Below are positions 412-46,200 of a stretch of 64,000 nucleotides of DNA, piece after piece. Made by a program: the position numbers and the translations under genes. Location: the NCBI GenBank assembly GCA_047495785.1, contig JBLDXI010000074.1, forward strand, positions 1,550,001 to 1,614,000. The letters run 5' to 3'. How positions within the stretch are numbered: the stretch's first letter is position 1; every line of letters starts with the position of its first letter. This stretch comes from Lepidodermella squamata. Its lineage: Eukaryota; Animalia; Gastrotricha. The notes under the pieces are model-generated. The model saw only the letters and a program-made list of their open reading frames with translations. It had not been told where the DNA came from and did no database searches.

Positions 412-3400
412 AGTGACGTTGCTTGGGAATTTTAGTCAACGTTAAAAAGAAGGATTCTGATGCGATACACATCGAATGAAAATGAGATCTGAGTTTCAGC
501 AGCAAACGTTCGACAAGCGACCGCAGAACATGACCAGAATGAAATTGAAAACTTGTGTCAGAAATTGCCAACTTTTCCCCTATTTTCGCCGACATTTTTT
601 TTTGAATTTTAAGATTCTTTCGATGGCGCACAGTCAAAAGGATGTCGTCAATAGGCTGTTTTTGTCGTAATGATACCTAAAACAAATGCGTATTATTGTT
701 GTTATTGTACAGGAGCTGCTGCGCTTTCATTGCGAGTCGCAGTCTCATTTTAGACATGGTTTTCCCACGATGAGCTCGCTCATATGAGCCGTGTTTTCAA
801 AATACCATAACTTCTAACTTCTAACACGTTTTTGTTTGGCAACAAGTTCTTGACCTACCAATTGGCACCTACCAATCTTGAAATGGATAATATTATTTTT
901 TTGGCAACCACATCATAATACTTGCACTGAACCACTCAGTAGCTAAAAATAGTAGCACCAATGTTTAGGTTTTTACCTGATGTGCCTGATGCCGGATGTT
1001 TAGGTATAAGATTGCGGCGACGCTGCTATCTCTACACAACTTTTATACGATGGTTCCCACATCACAGCCTCGTCGATGAAGTAAGTACGTGAGCGAATAA
1101 AAACGCGAGACGCCAACAACAAGTCAAGATGACAAGTCAAGAAGTAGCAGCAACAGCAACAGGTGTACTTCAACTAGCAGTGTGTATGCAGGTGAAGCAG
1201 GTATTAATTGATGAAGTGCGAAAAAGAACCGACAATAAAACAGCCGCAACAGCGTCGACGAATTAATTGCGAGCACGCGCGCCAAGCCAAGTACGCGCGG
1301 CGACAATTACTGCTATAATTTTACTATACCTACCTACCTACCTGAGATGGCGGCGGCTATTCGGCGCCGCTAATTTGTTCGACCGACCGACCGACCGACC
1401 GTTCTCCTCTCATCGTTTTTCCGCCCTTGCCAGCAGCAGCTAATATAGTAATTGAAATTACAACTGCGAGAAGCAAATCGATGGTCTATTCTTTCATTCT
1501 TTCTTTTTATTGTAGATTTTTGTACTATTTTATTTGTTTGTTGTTTCTTTCCTTTGTGTGTTTGCTTGTTGATTATTTCGAATATATGGTGTGGCCACCA
1601 GCATTATACCCTCCTTCGCCTGCGCCTCGTGATTAAAAATGCATGCGCGATGATCGGCGAAACAAAAAGCAACGCAGAAAACGCGAACGTGTTCGCCTAT
1701 AACTTATAATACTTTACCTGATGATGATGATGATGATGGTGATAGCAGGTATAGCCAGCAAGGGACGGCGCCAATCAGGAAATCGCGTGCCACGGCCATT
1801 GTCGCTAAAAAGCGCGCTCTTGCTACTGCGACTGCGACTGCGACTGCATTTGTGGTCGTGCTTTTTTCATCAAATCCGTTCAATTCAGTAGTAGGCAGCT
1901 GATGTAGCGAAGTATTTCGCTGTGTTTGGCGATGGTGGTTATATTTATTGGTGACGATGACACGCAGGCGCGGCCACTGACTCACTCGCTCGCTCACTCA
2001 CTCACCTGATGTCTGGTGTCTGGTGCCTTAAACGTCTGTCTGTCTGGTGACCCGCTTTGCTTAGAACGCGCCGCCAGCAAATACCGCGAGCGCGAAATGA
2101 ACAGGTTATGTTAAAGTTGGGGGTGTAAAGTTAAAGCAGTCAAATGCTTCGTCAATTAGCGACAACACATCATCATCATTTTGCGAGTCATCGTTTGCGC
2201 AGCTAACGATGACTCGCTCCCACGTGCCCGCAACTACAACTTTGTTACAAGTTAGTAACTATTTAAAACTAAACTACAACTACCTGTGTGTGTGTGTGTG
2301 TATGTCGTTATACATACATATATAGTTGGACCCTAATGACTGACGATGATGGTCAGTCATGGCGATGATGATGATGATGATGATGGTGGTGATTATTATA
2401 TTATGGGTGCGTCCACTGCTGCTGCTGCTGCGGCTGGCCGTGGAACGCGCGCGCGTATGCCTTAAAACATATGATGGCGTGGTGTTGTGTTTTTGACACG
2501 ACGACGGCCACCGCGACGGCGCAGCGACGACGAATGCAAGCGGCGCCGTTGAAACAACCGGTGCCATTCCATGCGTGTGTGCCTGTTTGCATGCTGTGTT
2601 GTAGTAGTAGATTGCCGCATGAAACAGCAGTGCGCGGGTGCGTTCGTGCCCACAACTTTTTTCTTCCAAGAAGAAGTATAGTATATTATCTATGCCTTAA
2701 CACAGGAAGGGCTGACCGCTGACCGCCGCCGTTTTTTAAATATAATAAACAAAAACATATCCTCCCGGCTGCAACTACTACTACTAATACTAATCTATCA
2801 ATTAATCAAAGCGTCTTTATTTTATTAATTGAATCTCGAGTCATGTCGTCGAGTTAAAAATGGTTGTGTGATGATCACCGATCGATTATCTTGATTTTGT
2901 TTATTATTTGTTTACTCATCCTCCAGTGCTCATACAGGTGGCATTGATTGATAGATAGTATATGCTGGAACCGCATGTCGTTATATAAGCTGTATGCTGG
3001 TTTTAAAAGCTCGGCAAACTATTTTGTCGCCGTTGATAATTTTACTAATAGTCAGCGCAGTAGAGGTATTGCGATGCTCACTTTTACCACTTAGTACCGC
3101 CGTTTTGCTACTACAACAACTGTACTACTACCTGTGCCAACTATTAAGCTAAGTAAGTATGTATATGTGTTTTGTTTTTGCCGCGCGACCGCTCTCATCG
3201 GCAACTGCTGCTGCGGCTGCGATGACGACGGCTACCGTGTTGTTTTGCGAATTATTGTGAGCAGTATACCAATGAACGAACACGCTTTTTGCCAGCCAGG
3301 CATATGTATTTGTGGCCATCAGGCTCGTGATCACCACGAGCCACAGCTTCTCGCATTCGTCGTATATATAGATAGTGTCATATCGCCGCCACTTCTTTGC

Positions 3401-4007
3401 GATCTCAATATAGCCCCAAAAATCACCGTCCGCCTTAATTGACCCTCGATCAGACATTCGCCGATCAGATGGTAACTGATCGAAACGCAATGTGCGGCGA
3501 TAACTCGACAATTTGGCGTGACCGCTTATGATGATAGCGACCTGCAATGATGAATGCATGAATCCAAGAAGGCTGTTTTATTGAAAGCTAACAAGGATTC
3601 GCTCGCACCAGCTCATGTTCGACTTTAAAGCTCAAGCTTCGCATGCTGTTCGTCGTTGATCACCGGCAATTCATCTCCATTACCGGTGTTATCGTACCGA
3701 AAACGTGAGCACCGCACCCACCTGTAGCTTATTCGTTATTTTCTTCCTGTTTTTTCGATGTTTGCCGCGCGGCGGAGTTTTTCGTCGGTTGCCGAATTTG
3801 TGTTAGCCAGCCGCGGCAAAAACACGACGTATTGCAGGATCATTGCAGCAGGGTGGCAGTGATTGTTATTTGCGACGAGGCTGTATATGGGTGTTGGTAT
3901 AGGTAGGTATAGGTATAGGTGTGGCGCATATTTTAGCTCGCGCACCATCATTATTTATTCGCCACGCGACGGAATGAACGATGAAAATAACAACAGCTAA
4001 CAACCAA

Positions 4008-33613: not shown

Positions 33614-34583
33614 CTTGCACTTCGCTATTTAAGTTTCAAGCTCAGCTTAAAGTCGCCTCCTCAAGTTCCGTTGGTAGAAGTGCGCCCTCAGAGGGCCTCG
33701 CTCTCAGATGGCTGAGAGGGCACCCCACCCCCCAACCTAACCCTAACTCTAAACCCTGACCCTAAAACTAACCCTAAACCTAACCTGAACCTTAATCTTG
33801 ACCGTCTGATCCATCTGAGCGATCCATCTGAGAGCGCACTTCTACCAACGATATTGGAAACGGCTTAAAATTAGCTCAGCGTATTTACACCTTAGCCTAG
33901 CGTACAAACTCAACTTGTTATAGCTGAAGCCAGCTACCTTATCAATCTCATCTTACTATCGACCAGGATAAGCTGAGCTGAGAAATTGAGCGTAGTAGAA
34001 TATTGAGTACCGGAATACTGTATACGCGATAATTTTCGTGAGTAGATTATTTTCGCGAAGGCCTTAAGATGAGCGGTAGACACTATTTGCGAGTGGAAAT
34101 TTTCGCGATCAAGCCTTCTGTGAACGGAAAATCGGGATATTCGGAAAATCATTCAAGAGATGTCGTTAGCGACGCGCCAAAACAACCACTTAACTATTTA
34201 TAGCTTTTTTTTTTATGGAAAGTACGTTCGACTCTTGAACGTAAATTCAAATTACGATGAGTACGATCAGTGCTCAAAAAGCCGAACGTACTCCTTCTTT
34301 ACGTTCGGCTCGTCAAAGTACTATCGAATGAGTCATCGAAGTGGTTGTTTTGGCGCATCGCTAACGATGTACTTATTTGCTGATGTTGAACACGCTGAGC
34401 TGGTTTGTCTTTGTCTATCGTCTTCAGTTCAGCTAGTCAGCTGAGCTTATTAATGACACTATGAAGTTAAGCTGACAAGCTGAGCTGAGCAGGTTATCTA
34501 ATCAGTTGAGCTTAGCTGAGCTTGTTCATGGTTTAGCTGAGCTGACTTCAGATGAGCTTATTATTTAAATAACGAAGTGCAAG
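33614..34583. mobile_element. MITE-like element with 19-bp TIRs and subterminal (AGCTGAGC/GCTCAGCT) repeats
   Basis: CTTGCACTTCGCTATTTAA (33614) and TTAAATAACGAAGTGCAAG (to 34583) are inverted with one mismatch. The TSD is unclear. Confidence 0.65.
33669..33850. mobile_element. Small nested inverted-repeat element enclosing degenerate telomere-like (CCCTAA/CCTAA)n repeats
   Basis: Perfect 17-bp inverted repeat CGTTGGTAGAAGTGCGC / GCGCACTTCTACCAACG. The core 33733-33795 reads caacctaaccctaactctaaaccctgaccctaaaactaaccctaaacctaacc. Confidence 0.75.
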
Positions 34584-38212: not shown

Positions 38213-38674
38213 GAATTTTTTGGAGGTAATTCATTCTTACTGGGAGACTCTGGCTATCAGCCCCGACGCTGGTGTGTCACTCCATTCCGCCAAACCGATA
38301 ACATCACCCCCGAAGAACGGAATTTCAATTATCGTCACTCCGTCGCGAGAGTGATAATTGAACAGGCATTCGGGCTTCTCAAGCAAAAATGGCGGCGGCT
38401 CTATCACCTACAATTTCGCCTCAATATTCGGCCCAGTGTTCGTTTCACGAAAGCGATGTGTGTACTACATAATTTCGGCATCCGAGTGGAGGGTGACGCT
38501 TACAATAACTTGCCCGATGAAGACCCGTTGCCGGCTCAACTTCTCGAGGCAGATCTGCAACTACAAGATGATTTTCTCGCAAATCTCGCTAACCATGAAA
38601 ACGATGACGGGAATGCGGCGAACCAGGCGGAGGGCGAAGAAAGGCGACAGGAAATTATGCTAATTTACCTTTAG
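38213..38674 (+). pseudogene. Harbinger transposase (DDE_Tnp_4/HARBI1-like) C-terminal exon
   Basis: FLLGDSGY..R.WCVTPF...EERNFNYRHSVARVIIEQAFGLLKQKWRRL...CVLHNF. Confidence 0.9.
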
Positions 38675-39222: not shown

Positions 39223-40050
39223 TCTTGCTGCATGTAATTTTCTTACGCCGCTGCTGCGCTGCGCTTGCAGCGTGGCGTAATGGGCAGGTCCCATTGTCTT
39301 GCGTTGTCTTGCGGAAAAAAGGAGTTTTATGTTTTATATAGTAAAGGTCTAGTAAGAGCCAGCGGCTAGAAAAGCCAGTGGCCAGCTTGAAACATCAGAT
39401 CTCCCATTCAAAAGAGTCAAGAGTTCGAGTAGAGCAGCGGTCAGATGTTCGTGGCATTGAGTAAGTCACCCAGCCCTAGCTAGACGATCAAATCATGCAG
39501 TCAGCGAGATGATGCGTTTTCAATGTGTTCACTGCATGACACCAGCGGCGCGTTCGATCAGCTGTTCCCACAACTCAGTTTTACAAGCTCCCGCAAGATC
39601 TCTTGCTGCATGTAATTTGCTCACTAAATTGTCTTACGCTGCGCTTGCAGCGTGGCGTAATGGGCAGGTCCCTAGTTTGATAATTTTGATAACAGAAAAC
39701 CGAGAAAAGTGAGACCAACAATCTCAAAGATCACCGGGGCGTATTCGATTGGAATCCTAGGTTCTCAATTTCGGGAAGATGTGAAACGTTAGAAGGGCTG
39801 TCGAGGTCACTCTTTTCGCCTGGCTCGTTTGGAGAGGAAGCGGCCAGCTTGAAACATTGGATGTCAAATTTCCCCAACAGTGAAGAGTTCGAGTCCAGCA
39901 TCGGTCAAATGTTCCTGGAATTGAGAAAGTTACTTAGCAGCCAACCTAGCTAGAAGTTCAGAGCATGCAGTCAGCGTGACGATAAGCTTTTAATGTGATT
40001 CACTGACACCAGCGAGTATCGTCGCGGTCAATCCGCCGTCCCCACAACTC
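39223..40050. repeat. Old diverged tandem duplication (two ~380-450 bp units)
   Basis: TCTTGCTGCATGTAATTT..GCGCTTGCAGCGTGGCGTAATGGGCAGGTCCC occurs at 39223 and 39601. GGCCAGCTTGAAACAT...CCCACAACTC occurs at 39380-39576 and 39842-40050. Confidence 0.8.
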
Positions 40051-40170
40051 TAATGGGTATGTCCTGTGCGATACCATGGCTCAGGGGGACGTAAAATAAA
40101 TCGCATGACATCTTTCAGGGTACCTTCCGAGATCAATGCTGAAGGCCAAATTGGGTATTTGGCTGTTCGC

Positions 40171-40817
40171 AAATTCAAGTGCAATGTGTAACTTGGTGGA
40201 ACCAACGAATCCACAAAATCACCCTTGTGAGCATCGCCACGAATCGGCATCGTGCCCAAACCAGCCGATTCGGGCATTTTCGCGCTTCATTGGTTAGTGG
40301 CAGCAAGCGCAAACGCGTTGGCAGGCTATTCGCGGCCATTGCAGCTGACCGGTATTCCGCTGCCAGCCAAAGAATGCTGGAATCGCTGTATCCACCCTTG
40401 TACGCATCGCCACGAATCGGCATCGTGCCCAAACCATCCGAATCGGGCATATTCGCGCTTCATTCGGTAGCGGCAGCAAGCGCAAACGCGTTGGCAGGCT
40501 ATTCGCGGCCATTGCAGCTGACCGGTATTCCGCTGCCAGCCAAAGAATGCTGGAATCGCTGTAAACACCCTTGTACGCATCGCCACGAATCGGCATCGTG
40601 CCCAAACCATCCGAATCGGGCATATTCGCGCTTCATTCGTTAGTGGCAGCAAGCGCAAACGCGTTGGCAGGCTATTCGCGGCCATTGCAGCTGACCGGTA
40701 TTCCGCTGCCAGCCAAAGAATGCTGGAATCGCTGTATTCACCCTTGTACGCATCGCCACGAATCGGCATCGTGCCCAAACCAGCCGAATCAGGCATATTC
40801 GCGCTTCATTCGGTAGC
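40171..40817. repeat. Satellite head (48-bp unique leader) plus ~3.5 monomers of the 173-bp satellite
   Basis: AAATTCAAGTGCAATGTGTAACTTGGTGGAACCAACGAATCCACAAAA is followed by monomers, which break off at ...CATTCGGTAGC. Confidence 0.95.
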
Positions 40818-43226
40818 AGAACAGCAGCAAAGTCAAGAGGCGTGGCGAATGTTGGCTGCTAGGTTTAATCGTCTCAAACGCAGCAAACGACTTGGTACCC
40901 TGGTTGATCAAAAGACGGGGCTTGTAGCCACTGACGACAAGGCAAAAGCACAACTGATCGCGGCAATCTTCAGCAAAGTTGTAAGTGGAGCACCAGCCTC
41001 TTCAAAACGCCCAGAGGACACTGCGTTCTGGCAGCAGGTAGAGAGTGCGGTTGCATCTAACTCGTCAATAAAACCACTGGAAAGAATCCCCGAAGTGCTA
41101 CCAATAAAAATTTCCCGCTTCACAATGAGGCTGTTCATTCGTCGGCTTAAAAACAAAGCGCCTGGTAACGACAATATTCTCAACGCTGTCATAAAAAATG
41201 GCGGTCCAGGACTCCGTAGTCACCTGAAGTACGCGTTTGAATTGTGCCTTGCTACAGGCTATATACCGGCAGAATGGCAACTGGCGATCGTCGTGCCGAT
41301 CCTGAAGGAGGGAAAGGATAGCAGGCTCCCGGAATCATACCGCCCGGTGTCACTGTTGCCAGCCTTCGCGAAGCTACTAGAGTCACTGGTAGCCATGATG
41401 CTACAAAATTTCCTGGAAGCTCAGAGCCTGCTACCCGAGCATCAGTATGGATTTCGAAGACTCCGAGGCGCTGTCGACCCACTTTTTCGCCTGATTAGCG
41501 ATGCAGCCCTCGCCATGGCCCATCACAGCAAGCTCGTGGCTGTGTTCTTGGACTTCAAGGCCGCCTTCGATACGGTCTGGCACGCAGGGCTTATACAAAA
41601 ACTGATCGATTCTGGAGCCCCGGAGCCTTTGGTGCGATGGACAGCGAACTTCCTAGACGACCGATCGTTTCAGGTCCGAGTTGGAGACGAGCTCAGCGAA
41701 TCAAGAAAAATCGGCTGCGGTGTGCCACAAGGTAGCCCGTTGAGTCCGCTGCTGTTCATATTTTACTGCGCGGATATGCAGCCTCCGGAGTCAAACCCTG
41801 ACGACGGGAGAAAAGCGGTCGCCGCCTGGACCTACGCAGACGACGCCGCAAACTGGGCATGGGGCCCGCATTACGAGCAGTGCGTTGTAAGACTACAAGC
41901 CCGCCTCCGATCCACCGAAGCGTGGTGCGCGAAATGGCGTCTAGAACTTAATCCGGCGAAATGCGAAAGCATTCTAATCGGCCACACTGGCGCTTCGTCC
42001 CCGTCGGTTCTTCTCTCCATTGCTGGTCAACGAATCCCTCAAGTCAACGAAGTAAAATACCTAGGAATCACGATCACGGCGAAATTGTCGTGGGAACGCC
42101 ACCTCGACCGTCTGTCTGCGAAGACGAAACCGCGAGCTGCCTGCCTCAGAGGAATAAGTAGCTTGTAGGCGCATTGTCCCCAGCGATCTTTGCATCATGT
42201 TCAGCCGAGTCCTCATCGACAGCGTGCTCACATATGGATCTCCAGCCTGGTACTGTCTGCCAAAAACCTCCGAACTGCGCCTTTTCAACTTTCAAGCACA
42301 CGGGTTAAGAGCAGCAATGGATCTGCCATTTGAGTGCGATTCCTTCGGAGTCGTCGTCGAAGCGAAGGCGGCAGCAATCAGCGACGTCTTTGAGAAGCAA
42401 CTGGAGCGCTATGGCGAACGCTGTCTCACCGCGGACAATGGCATGAAAGAGTACTTGCAGTATATCGCCAGTCAGCAGCCTGATGCCTTCGGCAAGCGGA
42501 TGCTCGACCTACACTATCCAGCCTGGCACCTACGCCGCAATGTCGCCCCCTCAATGGCGCAAAATAAGAGAATCACAGATTTCTTCAACCCTCGATAGCC
42601 TTTACTGCCTTGTTTTATTGTTGCGTTCCCTTGTTGAGCCTTTAGGTCCTTGGAGCCCCTGTGCACGAGCCCTAAGCCTTCCCGAACCTGGAACGTAAGT
42701 CACGTTAAATGAGTCTCTGTAATTTCTTGTTCCAGAGCCTGAGCCTGAGCCTGAGCCCTGAGCCTGAGCCTGAGCCTGACATCTAACACCGGATTCTTGA
42801 GCCTGAGCCCTGAGCCTTTGAGCCTTCAGCCCTATGAAGAGCCTGATGTGATATGGGTGTATATATGCATCGTAAGCCGTTTTCAAATGAGTTAACCCCT
42901 GCCTTCGATCTTTTCAGAAAATCCGCCCTGAGCCCTAGCCACTATAGCCCTGAAATGAGCCTTTCAACTTGCCCGTCAAAGCCGCGAAGGTCGACCAACG
43001 AATCAACAATTTTCTACTTTTCTATTCAAACCAATATAAAAAACCGGCAAGAAAAAAAAAATATATATATAAACAATAACAACTATAAAAAACTCCTATG
43101 ATCGAGATACATGCGTGTTCGACTAGAGCCCTGATTAGCATGGGGGCAAGTTATTTCTGTAATCTTTCTAACTCATGTGCCTATAGCGTCGAAAGGCGGA
43201 GGGCCTATAATAATAAAACTACAACA
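40818..43226 (+). mobile_element. 5'-truncated or internally deleted non-LTR retrotransposon (Jockey/I-group-like RT) with 3' UTR and A-rich tail
   Basis: RT motifs KAPGNDNI, W..AIVVPILK.GKD, SYRPVSLL, QYGFR, FLDFKAAFDTVWH, GVPQGSPLSPLLF, YADD, VKYLGI. One frameshift at ~42166 separates the C-terminal LTYGSPAW segment (to 42598). No endonuclease or ORF1 is present. It ends taataataaaactacaaca. Confidence 0.92.
42734..42832 (+). repeat. (GAGCCT)n hexamer array in the LINE 3' UTR
   Basis: gagcctgagcctgagcctgagccctgagcctgagcctgagcctga, with further degenerate copies downstream. Confidence 0.9.
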
Positions 43227-43230
43227 TGCT

Positions 43231-46200
43231 AAATTCAAGTGCAATGTGTAACTTAGTGGAACCAACGAATCCACAAAATCACCCTTGTGAGCATCGCCAC
43301 GAATCGGCATCGTGCCCAAACCAGCCGATTCGGGCATTTTCGCGCTTCATTGGTTAGTGGCAGCAAGCGCAAACGCGTTGGCAGGCTATTCGCGGCCATT
43401 GCAGCTGACCGGTATTCCGCTGCCAGCCAAAGAATGCTGGAATCGCTGTATCCACCCTTGTACGCATCGCCACGAATCGGCATCGTGCCCAAACCAGCCG
43501 AATCGGGCAAATTCGCGCTTCATTCGGTAGTGGCAGCAAGCGCAAACGCGTTGGCAGGCTATTCGCGGCCATTGCAGCTGACCGGTATTCCGCTGCCAGC
43601 CACAGAAGGCTGGAATCGCTGTATTCACCCTTGTACGCATCGCTACGAATCGGCATCGTGCCCAAACCACTCGATTCGGGCATTTTCGCGCTTCATTCGT
43701 TAGTGGCAGCAAGCGCAAACGCGTTGGCAGGCTATTCGCGGCCATTGCAGCTGACCGGTATTCCGCTGCCAGCCACAGAAGGCTGGAATCGCTGTATCCA
43801 CCCTTGTACGCATCGCTACGAATCGGCATCGTGCCCAAACCAGCCGATTCGGGCATATTCGCGCTTCATTCGGTAGCGGCAGCAAGCGCAAACGCGTTGG
43901 CAGGCTATTCGCGGCCATTGCAGCTGACCGGTATTCCGCTGCCAGCCAAAGAATGCTGGAATCGCTGTATTCACCCTTGTAGGCATCGCCACGAATCGGC
44001 ATCGTGCCCAAACCAGCCGATTCGGGCATTTTCGCGCTTCATTCGTTAGTGGCAGCAAGCGCAAACGCGTTGGCAGGCTATTCGCGGCCATTGCAGCTGA
44101 CCGGTATTCCGCTGCCAGCCAAAGAATGCTGGAATCGCTGTATCCACCCTTGTACGCATCGCCACGAATCGGCATCGTGCCCAAACCAGCCGATTCGGGC
44201 ATTTTCGCGCTTCATTCGTTAGTGGCAGCAAGCGCAAACGCGTTGGCAGGCTATTCGCGTCCATTGCAGCTGACCCGTATTCCGCTGCCAGCCACAGAAG
44301 GCTGGAATCACTGTATTCACCCTTGTACGCATCGCTACGAATCGGCATCGTGCCCAAACCAGCCGAATCAGGCATATTCGCGCTTCATTCGGTAGCGGCA
44401 GCAAGCGCAAACGCGTTGGCAGGCTATTCGCGGCCATTGCAGCTGACCGGTATTCCGCTGCCAGCCAAAGAATGCTGGAATCGCTGTATTCACCCTTGTA
44501 GGCATCGCCACGAATCGGCATCGTGCCCAAACCAGCCGATTCGGGCATTTTCGCGCTTCATTCGTTAGTGGCAGCAAGCGCAAACGCGTTGGCAGGCTAT
44601 TCGCGGCCATTGCAGCTGACCGGTATTCCGCTGCCAGCCACAGAAGGCTGGAATCACTGTATTCACCCTTGTACGCATCGCTACGAATCGGCATCGTGCC
44701 CAAACCAGCCGAATCGGGCATATTCGCGCTTCATTCGGTAGTGGCAGCAAGCGCAAACGCGTTGGCAGGCTATTCGCGGCCATTGCAGCTGACCGGTATT
44801 CCGCTGCCAGCCAAAGAATGCTGGAATCGCTGTATCCACCCTTGTACGCATCGCCACGAATCGGCATCGTGCCCAAACCAGCCGATTCGGGCATTTTCGC
44901 GCTTCATTCGTTAGTGGCAGCAAGCGCAAACGCGTTGGCAGGCTATTCGCGGCCATTGCAGCTGACCGGTATTCCGCTGCCAGCCAAAGAATGCTGGAAT
45001 CGCTGTATTCACCCTTGTACGCATCGCCACGAATCGGCATCGTGCCCAAACCAGCCGATTCGGGCATTTTCGCGCTTCATTTGTTAGTGGCAGCAAGCGC
45101 AAACGCGTTGGCAGGCTATTCGCGTCCATTGCAGCTGACCCGTATTCCGCTGCCAGCCACAGAAGGCTGGAATCGCTGTATTCACCCTTGTACGCATCGC
45201 TACGAATCGGCATCGTGCCCAAACCAGCCGATTCGGGAATATTCGCGCTTCATTCGTTGGTGGCAGCAAGCGCAAACGCGTTGGCAGGCTATTCGCGGCC
45301 ATTGCAGCTGACCGGTATTCCGCTGCCAGCCAAAGAATGCTGGAATCGCTGTATCCACCCTTGTACGCATCGCCACGAATCGGCATCGTGCCCAAACCAG
45401 CCGATTCGGGCATTTTCGCGCTTCATTCGTTAGTGGCAGCAAGCGCAAACGCGTTGGCAGGCTATTCGCGGCCATTGCAGCTGACCGGTATTCCGCTGCC
45501 AGCCAAAGAATGCTGGAATCGCTGTATTCACCCTTGTACGCATCGCCACGAATCGGCATCGTGCCCAAACCAGCCGATTCGGGCATTTTCGCGCTTCATT
45601 TGTTAGTGGCAGCAAGCGCAAACGCGTTGGCAGGCTATTCGCGTCCATTGCAGCTGACCCGTATTCCGCTGCCAGCCACAGAAGGCTGGAATCGCTGTAT
45701 TCACCCTTGTACGCATCGCTACGAATCGGCATCGTGCCCAAACCAGCCGAATCGGGCAAATTCGCGCTTCATTCGTTAGTGGCAGCAAGCGCAAACGCGT
45801 TGGCAGGCTATTCGCGGCCATTGCAGCTGACCGGTATTCCGCTGCCAGCCAAAGAATGCTGGAATCGCTGTATTCACCCTTGTACGCATCGCCACGAATC
45901 GGCATCGTGCCCAAACCAGCCGATTCGGGCATTTTCGCGCTTCATTCGTTAGTGGCAGCAAGCGCAAACGCGTTGGCAGGCTATTCGCGGCCATTGCAGC
46001 TGACCGGTATTCCGCTGCCAGCCAAAGAATGCTGGAATCGCTGTATTCACCCTTGTACGCATCGCTACGAATCGGCATCGTGCCCAAACCAGCCGATTCG
46101 GGAATATTCGCGCTTCATTCGTTGGTGGCAGCAAGCGCAAACGCGTTGGCAGGCTATTCGCGGCCATTGCAGCTGACCGGTATTCCGCTGCCAGCCACAG

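Follow-up and report, generated by a model that had tools for sequence, protein, structure and literature searches.

A 64,000-nucleotide stretch of the genome of the gastrotrich Lepidodermella squamata (assembly GCA_047495785.1, contig JBLDXI010000074.1, positions 1,550,001 to 1,614,000 of the forward strand; hereafter the window) raises the question of how a long interspersed nuclear element (LINE) came to stand between two copies of the head of a satellite array. The array is built of 173-bp monomers and opens with a 48-bp leader, and the leader together with the first monomers is found on both sides of the LINE. A sequence-only reading of the window had proposed a LINE-satellite composite mobile unit that seeded the array, and had offered three models for the layout: (a) leader and monomers are the 5' end of the retroelement, (b) the LINE targets the array boundary and made an unusually long target duplication, or (c) leader-satellite RNA is mobilised by the reverse transcriptase (RT) of the element through template switching or 3' transduction. 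The results presented here point to a single target-primed insertion of the LINE, in which the second strand was probably broken 647 bp away from the first nick. The locus would be a new natural example of a rare but known kind of LINE mishap, and no new LINE-satellite mobile unit. The parts of the duplicated structure, in positions of the window, are the following.

40171 to 40218, + strand: leader, copy A (the upstream copy of the duplicated target), from the alignment and the genome search.
40219 to 40817, + strand: mini-array A, 3.46 monomers with a blunt end at the LINE 5' junction; its first monomer is identical to the first monomer of copy B.
40818 to 43232, + strand: 5'-truncated, defective LINE (a non-long-terminal-repeat retrotransposon), corresponding to ~1514-3782 of a ~3.8-kb element.
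43231 to 43278, + strand: leader, copy B (the downstream copy of the duplicated target), abutting the LINE 3' terminus.
43279 to 43877, + strand: start of the main array, sharing the register of mini-array A and forming the rest of the 647-bp duplication.
43878 to 64000, + strand: remainder of the main 173-bp satellite array, which continues past the window to the end of the contig.

Alignment of 40171-40817 with 43231-43877 required no gaps and delimits a direct duplication of 647 bp, comprised of the 48-bp leader and 599 bp (3.46 monomers) of satellite. A single mismatch (40195 G, 43255 A) was observed in the first 266 bp of the two copies, confirming the near-identity of leader and first monomer at 40171 and 43231 that the sequence-only reading had described, and the remaining 381 bp contain 18 mismatches. 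By segment, the two copies differ at one position in the leader, at none in the first monomer (M1), at six in M2, at eight in M3, and at four in the last 80 bp. Furthermore, GTGAGC replaces GTACGC in M1 of both copies, a substitution absent from all other monomers of the 204-monomer array; the TGGTTAG variant, correctly called uncommon, is present in 8 of the 204. The duplication is real and far beyond chance, because the leader was found exactly twice in the 121-Mb assembly (allowing up to three mismatches, with 0 control matches), both times at this locus.

The ends of the duplication match both ends of the LINE to the base, with copy A stopping at the 5' junction and copy B starting at the 3' terminus; two to three A's at the junction between LINE and leader B are assignable to either side. 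Leader B thus abuts the LINE terminus directly, where a gap of a few bases after a LINE tail had been described, and the element itself ends in ...CATGCT(AA) with no A-rich tail. Because a target-site duplication (TSD) is defined by just this arrangement, in which the repeats meet the two ends of the insert with base precision, the 647 bp are read here as a TSD. The junction between satellite and LINE 5' end was unique in the genome searched.

This geometry also bears on two other accounts of the locus. The first is an assembly artefact, in which the contig falsely joins or duplicates the array head, for instance by placing two haplotypes in tandem at the satellite edge. The structure does open an array of 35 kb in which the contig then ends, a setting where assemblers often err; an artefact would nevertheless need a false join exactly at the LINE 3' terminus and exactly at the 5' truncation point, 19 positions distinguish the two copies, which are thus not the same reads used twice, and no alternative contig or second allele bearing the leader is present in the assembly. 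We consider such an error quite improbable. The second account is a history of at least two independent steps, with a LINE insertion that produced a normal short TSD, after which the array head was duplicated or rearranged non-homologously in an unrelated event. Base-exact coincidence of the rearrangement breakpoints with both LINE ends would be needed here too, and no short TSD is found at either junction, which makes this history very unlikely in our estimation even though satellite borders are prone to rearrangement and no specific likeness links the later monomers of one copy to those of the other.

Whether the satellite could belong to the LINE was examined through other members of the LINE family. 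Along its entire length the window copy shares 98.2% identity with a near full-length copy of ~3.8 kb (L029, on contig C2), and it is 99.2% identical to a shorter copy (L028, on C84). It starts within the RT reading frame, at ~1514 of the reference (L029 from 5301), and retains the RT domain (RVT_1, E 8e-35), the C-terminal region and a ~630-bp 3' untranslated region (UTR) that includes a (GAGCCT)n run at 42735-42779. Open reading frame (ORF) 1 and the endonuclease are missing, the reading frame is broken at 42166-42168, and the copy is, judged by its sequence, dead. L029 encodes an ORF1 of 95 aa that overlaps the start of an endonuclease-RT frame, with Pfam matches to Exo_endo_phos (6.6e-19) and RVT_1 (1.3e-34), and the database relatives of the LINE are unnamed proteins of ~850-960 aa with endonuclease and RT. 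We take this layout to be RTE-like in organisation: the compact size, the short ORF1 overlapping a single endonuclease-RT ORF, and the lack of RNase H, of a zinc-knuckle domain and of a poly(A) tail are shared with RTE-like LINEs, while the 3' UTR is rather long for such an element.

Neither end of the LINE was found to carry satellite or leader sequence in the rest of the family. When the final 100 bp of the LINE were searched against the genome together with the leader, at least 40 matches to the LINE part were obtained, all stopping at the same nucleotide. Because about a dozen copies share the ...CATGCT(AA) terminus and continue into unrelated downstream flanks, the leader is not LINE 3' sequence and was not transduced elsewhere. 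At the other end, L029 and an independent 5' fragment on C11 have unrelated DNA upstream and start with a short 5' region and ORF1. Neither leader nor monomers were detected at these two 5' ends, and a sensitive BLAST comparison of leader and monomers with the full LINE element returned nothing significant; the monomers are therefore not a LINE 5' UTR. Model (a) is contradicted by the near full-length copy, which has its short 5' region and 95-aa ORF1 where the leader and monomers should stand, and by the truncation of the window copy inside the RT reading frame. The part of model (c) that invoked 3' transduction likewise fails, given the fixed 3' terminus and the unrelated DNA that follows it elsewhere, whereas its other part, template switching, is retained as an unlikely alternative and is weighed below.

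With both ends of the element accounted for, the composite mobile unit, in which leader and monomers would be part of the retroelement (as 5' promoter monomers or as transduced 3' sequence) and the array a runaway expansion of them, is highly improbable. What speaks for it at this locus is the local layout. A leader carried by the element, through 3' transduction or as part of a composite, should recur with other LINE copies; it was found twice, both times here, and the other copies end in unrelated DNA with no link to satellite or leader. The sequence-only reading had itself named this combination in advance as speaking against its proposal. Tandem monomers of the kind found in mouse L1 are absent from the 5' ends of both L029 and the C11 fragment, the full-length copy showing no similarity to the monomers, and the window LINE has no ORF1 or endonuclease and a broken frame. 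The likeness to the promoter monomers in the 5' UTR of mouse L1 is that tandem monomers lie physically beside a LINE; the difference is that the monomers here are not part of the LINE, being absent from the full-length copy and unrelated to it in sequence. Similarly, the theme of transposable elements seeding satellites is shared with satellites born from tandem double insertions (McGurk and Barbash, bioRxiv 10.1101/158386 / PMC5932611), but the present satellite family occurs at several loci without the LINE.

The satellite was characterised both in the main array and at these other loci. From 43279 to the end of contig C74 the main array contains 204 consecutive 173-bp monomers (~35.4 kb) with no indel and a mean monomer identity to the consensus of 98.2%; 119.8 of the monomers lie inside the window and the contig ends within the array, so that the more than 120 monomers previously stated are borne out up to the contig end and slightly exceed the number in the window. 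The monomer holds an 8-bp inverted repeat (GAATCGGC ... GCCGATTC). Related arrays, with 77-81% identity, are present on C43, C4, C64, C7 and C31, and their differing phases, unrelated flanks and lack of such a LINE argue further against a composite unit. Specifically, the arrays fetched from C43, C4 and C64 start and end at differing monomer phases, with flanks unrelated to each other and to the window flank; no copy of this LINE was found in these three loci, and no shared flank or leader was found at the related arrays. No Rfam family, ribozymes included, was matched anywhere in the window, which also counts against a composite unit. The LINE and the satellite are unrelated, and the insertion says nothing on the origin of the satellite.

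Two of the related loci showed additional structure. The array on C43 (L024:6617-7410; G000:C43, ~711.6-712.4 kb) is interrupted by a ~800-bp insert with terminal inverted repeats (CACAAATGCGTCCGACG... / ...CGTCGGACGCATTTGTG), which looks like a DNA transposon of the miniature inverted-repeat transposable element type. The arrays on C4 (L025:1-6917; ~2158-2165 kb) and C7 (~4641-4653 kb) each consist of two opposite arms, head to head, and the switch of orientation on C4 was located at L025:4890/4896.

The left edge of the duplication lies within one further feature.

39628 to 40179, strand not assigned: fragment of an old dispersed repeat, with copies elsewhere 70-83% identical, which crosses the left duplication edge and extends 9 bp into the leader.

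Three relatives of this repeat stay aligned across the edge (...GGCT..CGC|AA.TTCAAG), with 8 of 9 matches past 40170 in a fixed register. Since the old repeat is unbroken across 40170/40171, copy A still has its original surroundings, and the duplication begins on the left at a breakpoint within ordinary flanking DNA and not at the start of a unit. Other identities for the leader were tried and rejected. As a decayed satellite monomer it gave a local alignment score under the shuffle mean; as the terminus of some other multi-copy element it is contradicted by its two copies and by its first 9 bp, which continue the old repeat; and as LINE 3' UTR or tail it is contradicted by the other LINE copies, which stop at ...CATGCT(AA). 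An allele lacking the insertion was not found, and a metagenome scan for the leader was blank.

The continuity of the old repeat is also relevant to template switching. According to this alternative, the RT would have left the LINE RNA at a point inside the RT gene, switched to a satellite transcript or to the displaced target strand, and copied 3.46 monomers and the leader to the end of that template, so that copy A would be a retro-copy or repair copy. An RNA template would need a 5' end that happens to coincide with the nucleotide beside the first nick (40171 matching 43231), a correspondence that is automatic under a TSD, and the unbroken repeat over 40170/40171 means that no natural unit starts there. 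In favour of a switch, an 18-nt LINE repeat at the 5' junction of L028 indicates irregular 5'-end resolution in this LINE family, and the later monomers of copy A are close to no present monomer, which fits a template that was out of register or different. A switch is unlikely on balance, in a judgement that takes in the variants with a DNA template; the DNA-template form is indistinguishable from a long TSD by sequence alone.

A single insertion with a 647-bp target duplication remains the probable explanation, and the order of events would have been as follows. Before the insertion the locus would have run from the old repeat fragment through the leader into the satellite array. The endonuclease would have nicked the bottom strand just left of the leader (...GTTCGC|AAATTC), where the A's of the target match the AA at the 3' end of the element. 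Reverse transcription, primed at this nick, would have stopped or been cut short inside the RT gene. The top-strand break would have been made 647 bp further right, in the fourth monomer and 80 bp from its start; alternatively, a break or replication end already present at that point would have been used. Fill-in would then have duplicated the interval between the breaks to yield leader and 3.46 monomers, LINE, and leader and array. Unequal exchange or gene conversion would later have replaced, in one copy or in both, the monomers past the first 45 bp of M2, leaving leader, M1 and 45 bp as the near-identical remnant.

The hallmarks of target-primed reverse transcription (TPRT) are present: the family is dispersed and has an endonuclease of the AP (apurinic/apyrimidinic) type together with an RT, and the insert has the canonical 3' terminus, a truncated 5' end and direct target repeats abutting both ends. 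As an otherwise normal 5'-truncated insert flanked by a duplication of more than 100 bp, it belongs with the long-TSD class (>100 bp). For human L1 in HeLa cells, TSDs of more than 100 bp made up less than 10% of recovered events, and in cells deficient in nucleotide excision repair they were the majority, with lengths of up to 5.3 kb (PMC5223499). Long L1 TSDs have been explained by an unrelated second nick far away, or by DNA ends that replication or repair provides (PMC5223499), and extremely long TSDs have been seen with 5'-truncated inserts (PMC2912911). Long L1 TSDs in cultured cells are reported by Gilbert 2002/2005 and Symer 2002, as cited in PMC5223499, and in that paper by Servant et al. 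2017; TSD length is otherwise characteristic of the LINE species (PMC4245944). The insertion described here resembles the long-TSD inserts of human L1 in its 5' truncation, intact 3' end and direct target duplication of hundreds of bases at both ends, and the proposed cause, a second-strand break far from the endonuclease nick, is the same. It differs in being a fixed (assembled) germline insertion of a different LINE, without a poly(A) tail, in a small invertebrate, and in its position at the border of a satellite array, where the duplication would have been partly overwritten by array turnover.

Target duplications elsewhere in this LINE family are short. The TSD of L028 measures 14-16 bp, and those of L013 and L015 are probably 12 bp and 9 bp, respectively, so that the family range of 9-16 bp rests on three copies. 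The ordinary TPRT insertions of the family, such as L028, share with the window copy the 3' terminus, the 5' truncation and the insertion beside A's, and the copy on C84 is likewise within a tandem repeat; their TSDs are ~9-16 bp, compared with 647 bp here. L028 itself (L028:7129-10000; G000:C84, ~95.1-98.0 kb; also L001) sits within a different tandem repeat, with a 325-bp period, and has the TSD sequence (AA)GTAACCCGAAATCG. An 18-nt stretch of the LINE is repeated at its 5' junction, and the 8 bases upstream of its target (CATGCGAA) resemble the terminus of the LINE itself (CATGCTAA). A preference of the LINE for tandem repeats was unsupported, with 2 of ~20 examined copies lying in arrays. 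Of model (b), then, the unusually long target duplication stands as the best reading, and the targeting of array boundaries does not, one event being no evidence for it.

Several observations weigh against a single insertion with a 647-bp TSD. The duplication lies outside the family range, being 647 bp in register and 266 bp near-identical, and at its full length is ~40 times the usual TSD of this LINE. No microhomology was found at the LINE 5' junction of the window copy. Beyond the first 266 bp the copies are as unlike as random monomers of the array, with 6 and 8 mismatches per monomer in M2 and M3 against an array mean of 4.9 per 173 bp, and the best match deeper in the array to the later monomers of copy A still has 9 mismatches in 382 positions. 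The full extent of 647 bp consequently depends on register, geometry and an assumed later turnover. A longer original duplication that was later shortened may also be considered; an exact match to the later monomers of copy A, which would show it, was not found deeper in the array.

The pattern of the later differences is consistent with such turnover. From one change in 266 bp, ~1-2 point mutations would be expected in the rest of the duplication and 18 differences were found; this leads us to infer that monomers were overwritten after the insertion, by unequal exchange or by gene conversion. Furthermore, 14 of the 18 later differences affect positions at which the rest of the array has both alleles, the pattern expected of recombinational turnover. 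M2 and M3 of copy A carry four private bases. There is room for a variant in which the later monomers of copy A came from a different template while the insertion was being resolved. In a more radical and unlikely variant, the RT would have made copy A from a nascent satellite transcript that starts at the leader. If true, the latter would show directly that a LINE RT had copied satellite RNA back into the genome.

The insertion appears to be young, with two estimates in agreement: the nearest copies of the LINE match it at 99.2% and 98.2% identity, and the duplicated leader, M1 and adjoining 45 bp show one change in 266. A speculative extension, to which we give little credence, is that the array head is a dated fossil. 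In that case one of 266 bases would have changed in leader and M1, whereas replacement would have brought the later monomers to background divergence; recombinational turnover at the edge of the array would exceed point mutation by at least an order of magnitude, and long-TSD insertions would split off and seed new mini-arrays.

The region to the left of the array contains other repeats. A young dispersed repeat at 39237-39602 has at least nine copies elsewhere that are 86-95% identical, and the translation of an ORF at 38351-38674 may resemble the C-terminal part of a Harbinger/PIF-type transposase. A short interstitial telomere-like run of mixed CCTAA and CCCTAA units is located at 33734-33792, where transposons abound, ~6 kb upstream of the array.

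Outside cell-culture assays of L1, there are few records of natural, fixed LINE insertions whose target duplications span hundreds of bases. The locus described here would represent the same aberrant resolution for another LINE, in the germline of a distant invertebrate. In practical terms it would serve as a time-stamp, the copy upstream of the LINE keeping the array head as it was at insertion. The trapped copy may allow point mutation and satellite turnover at an array border to be compared directly, and an insertion of this kind would be one way for a satellite to split off a separate mini-array.

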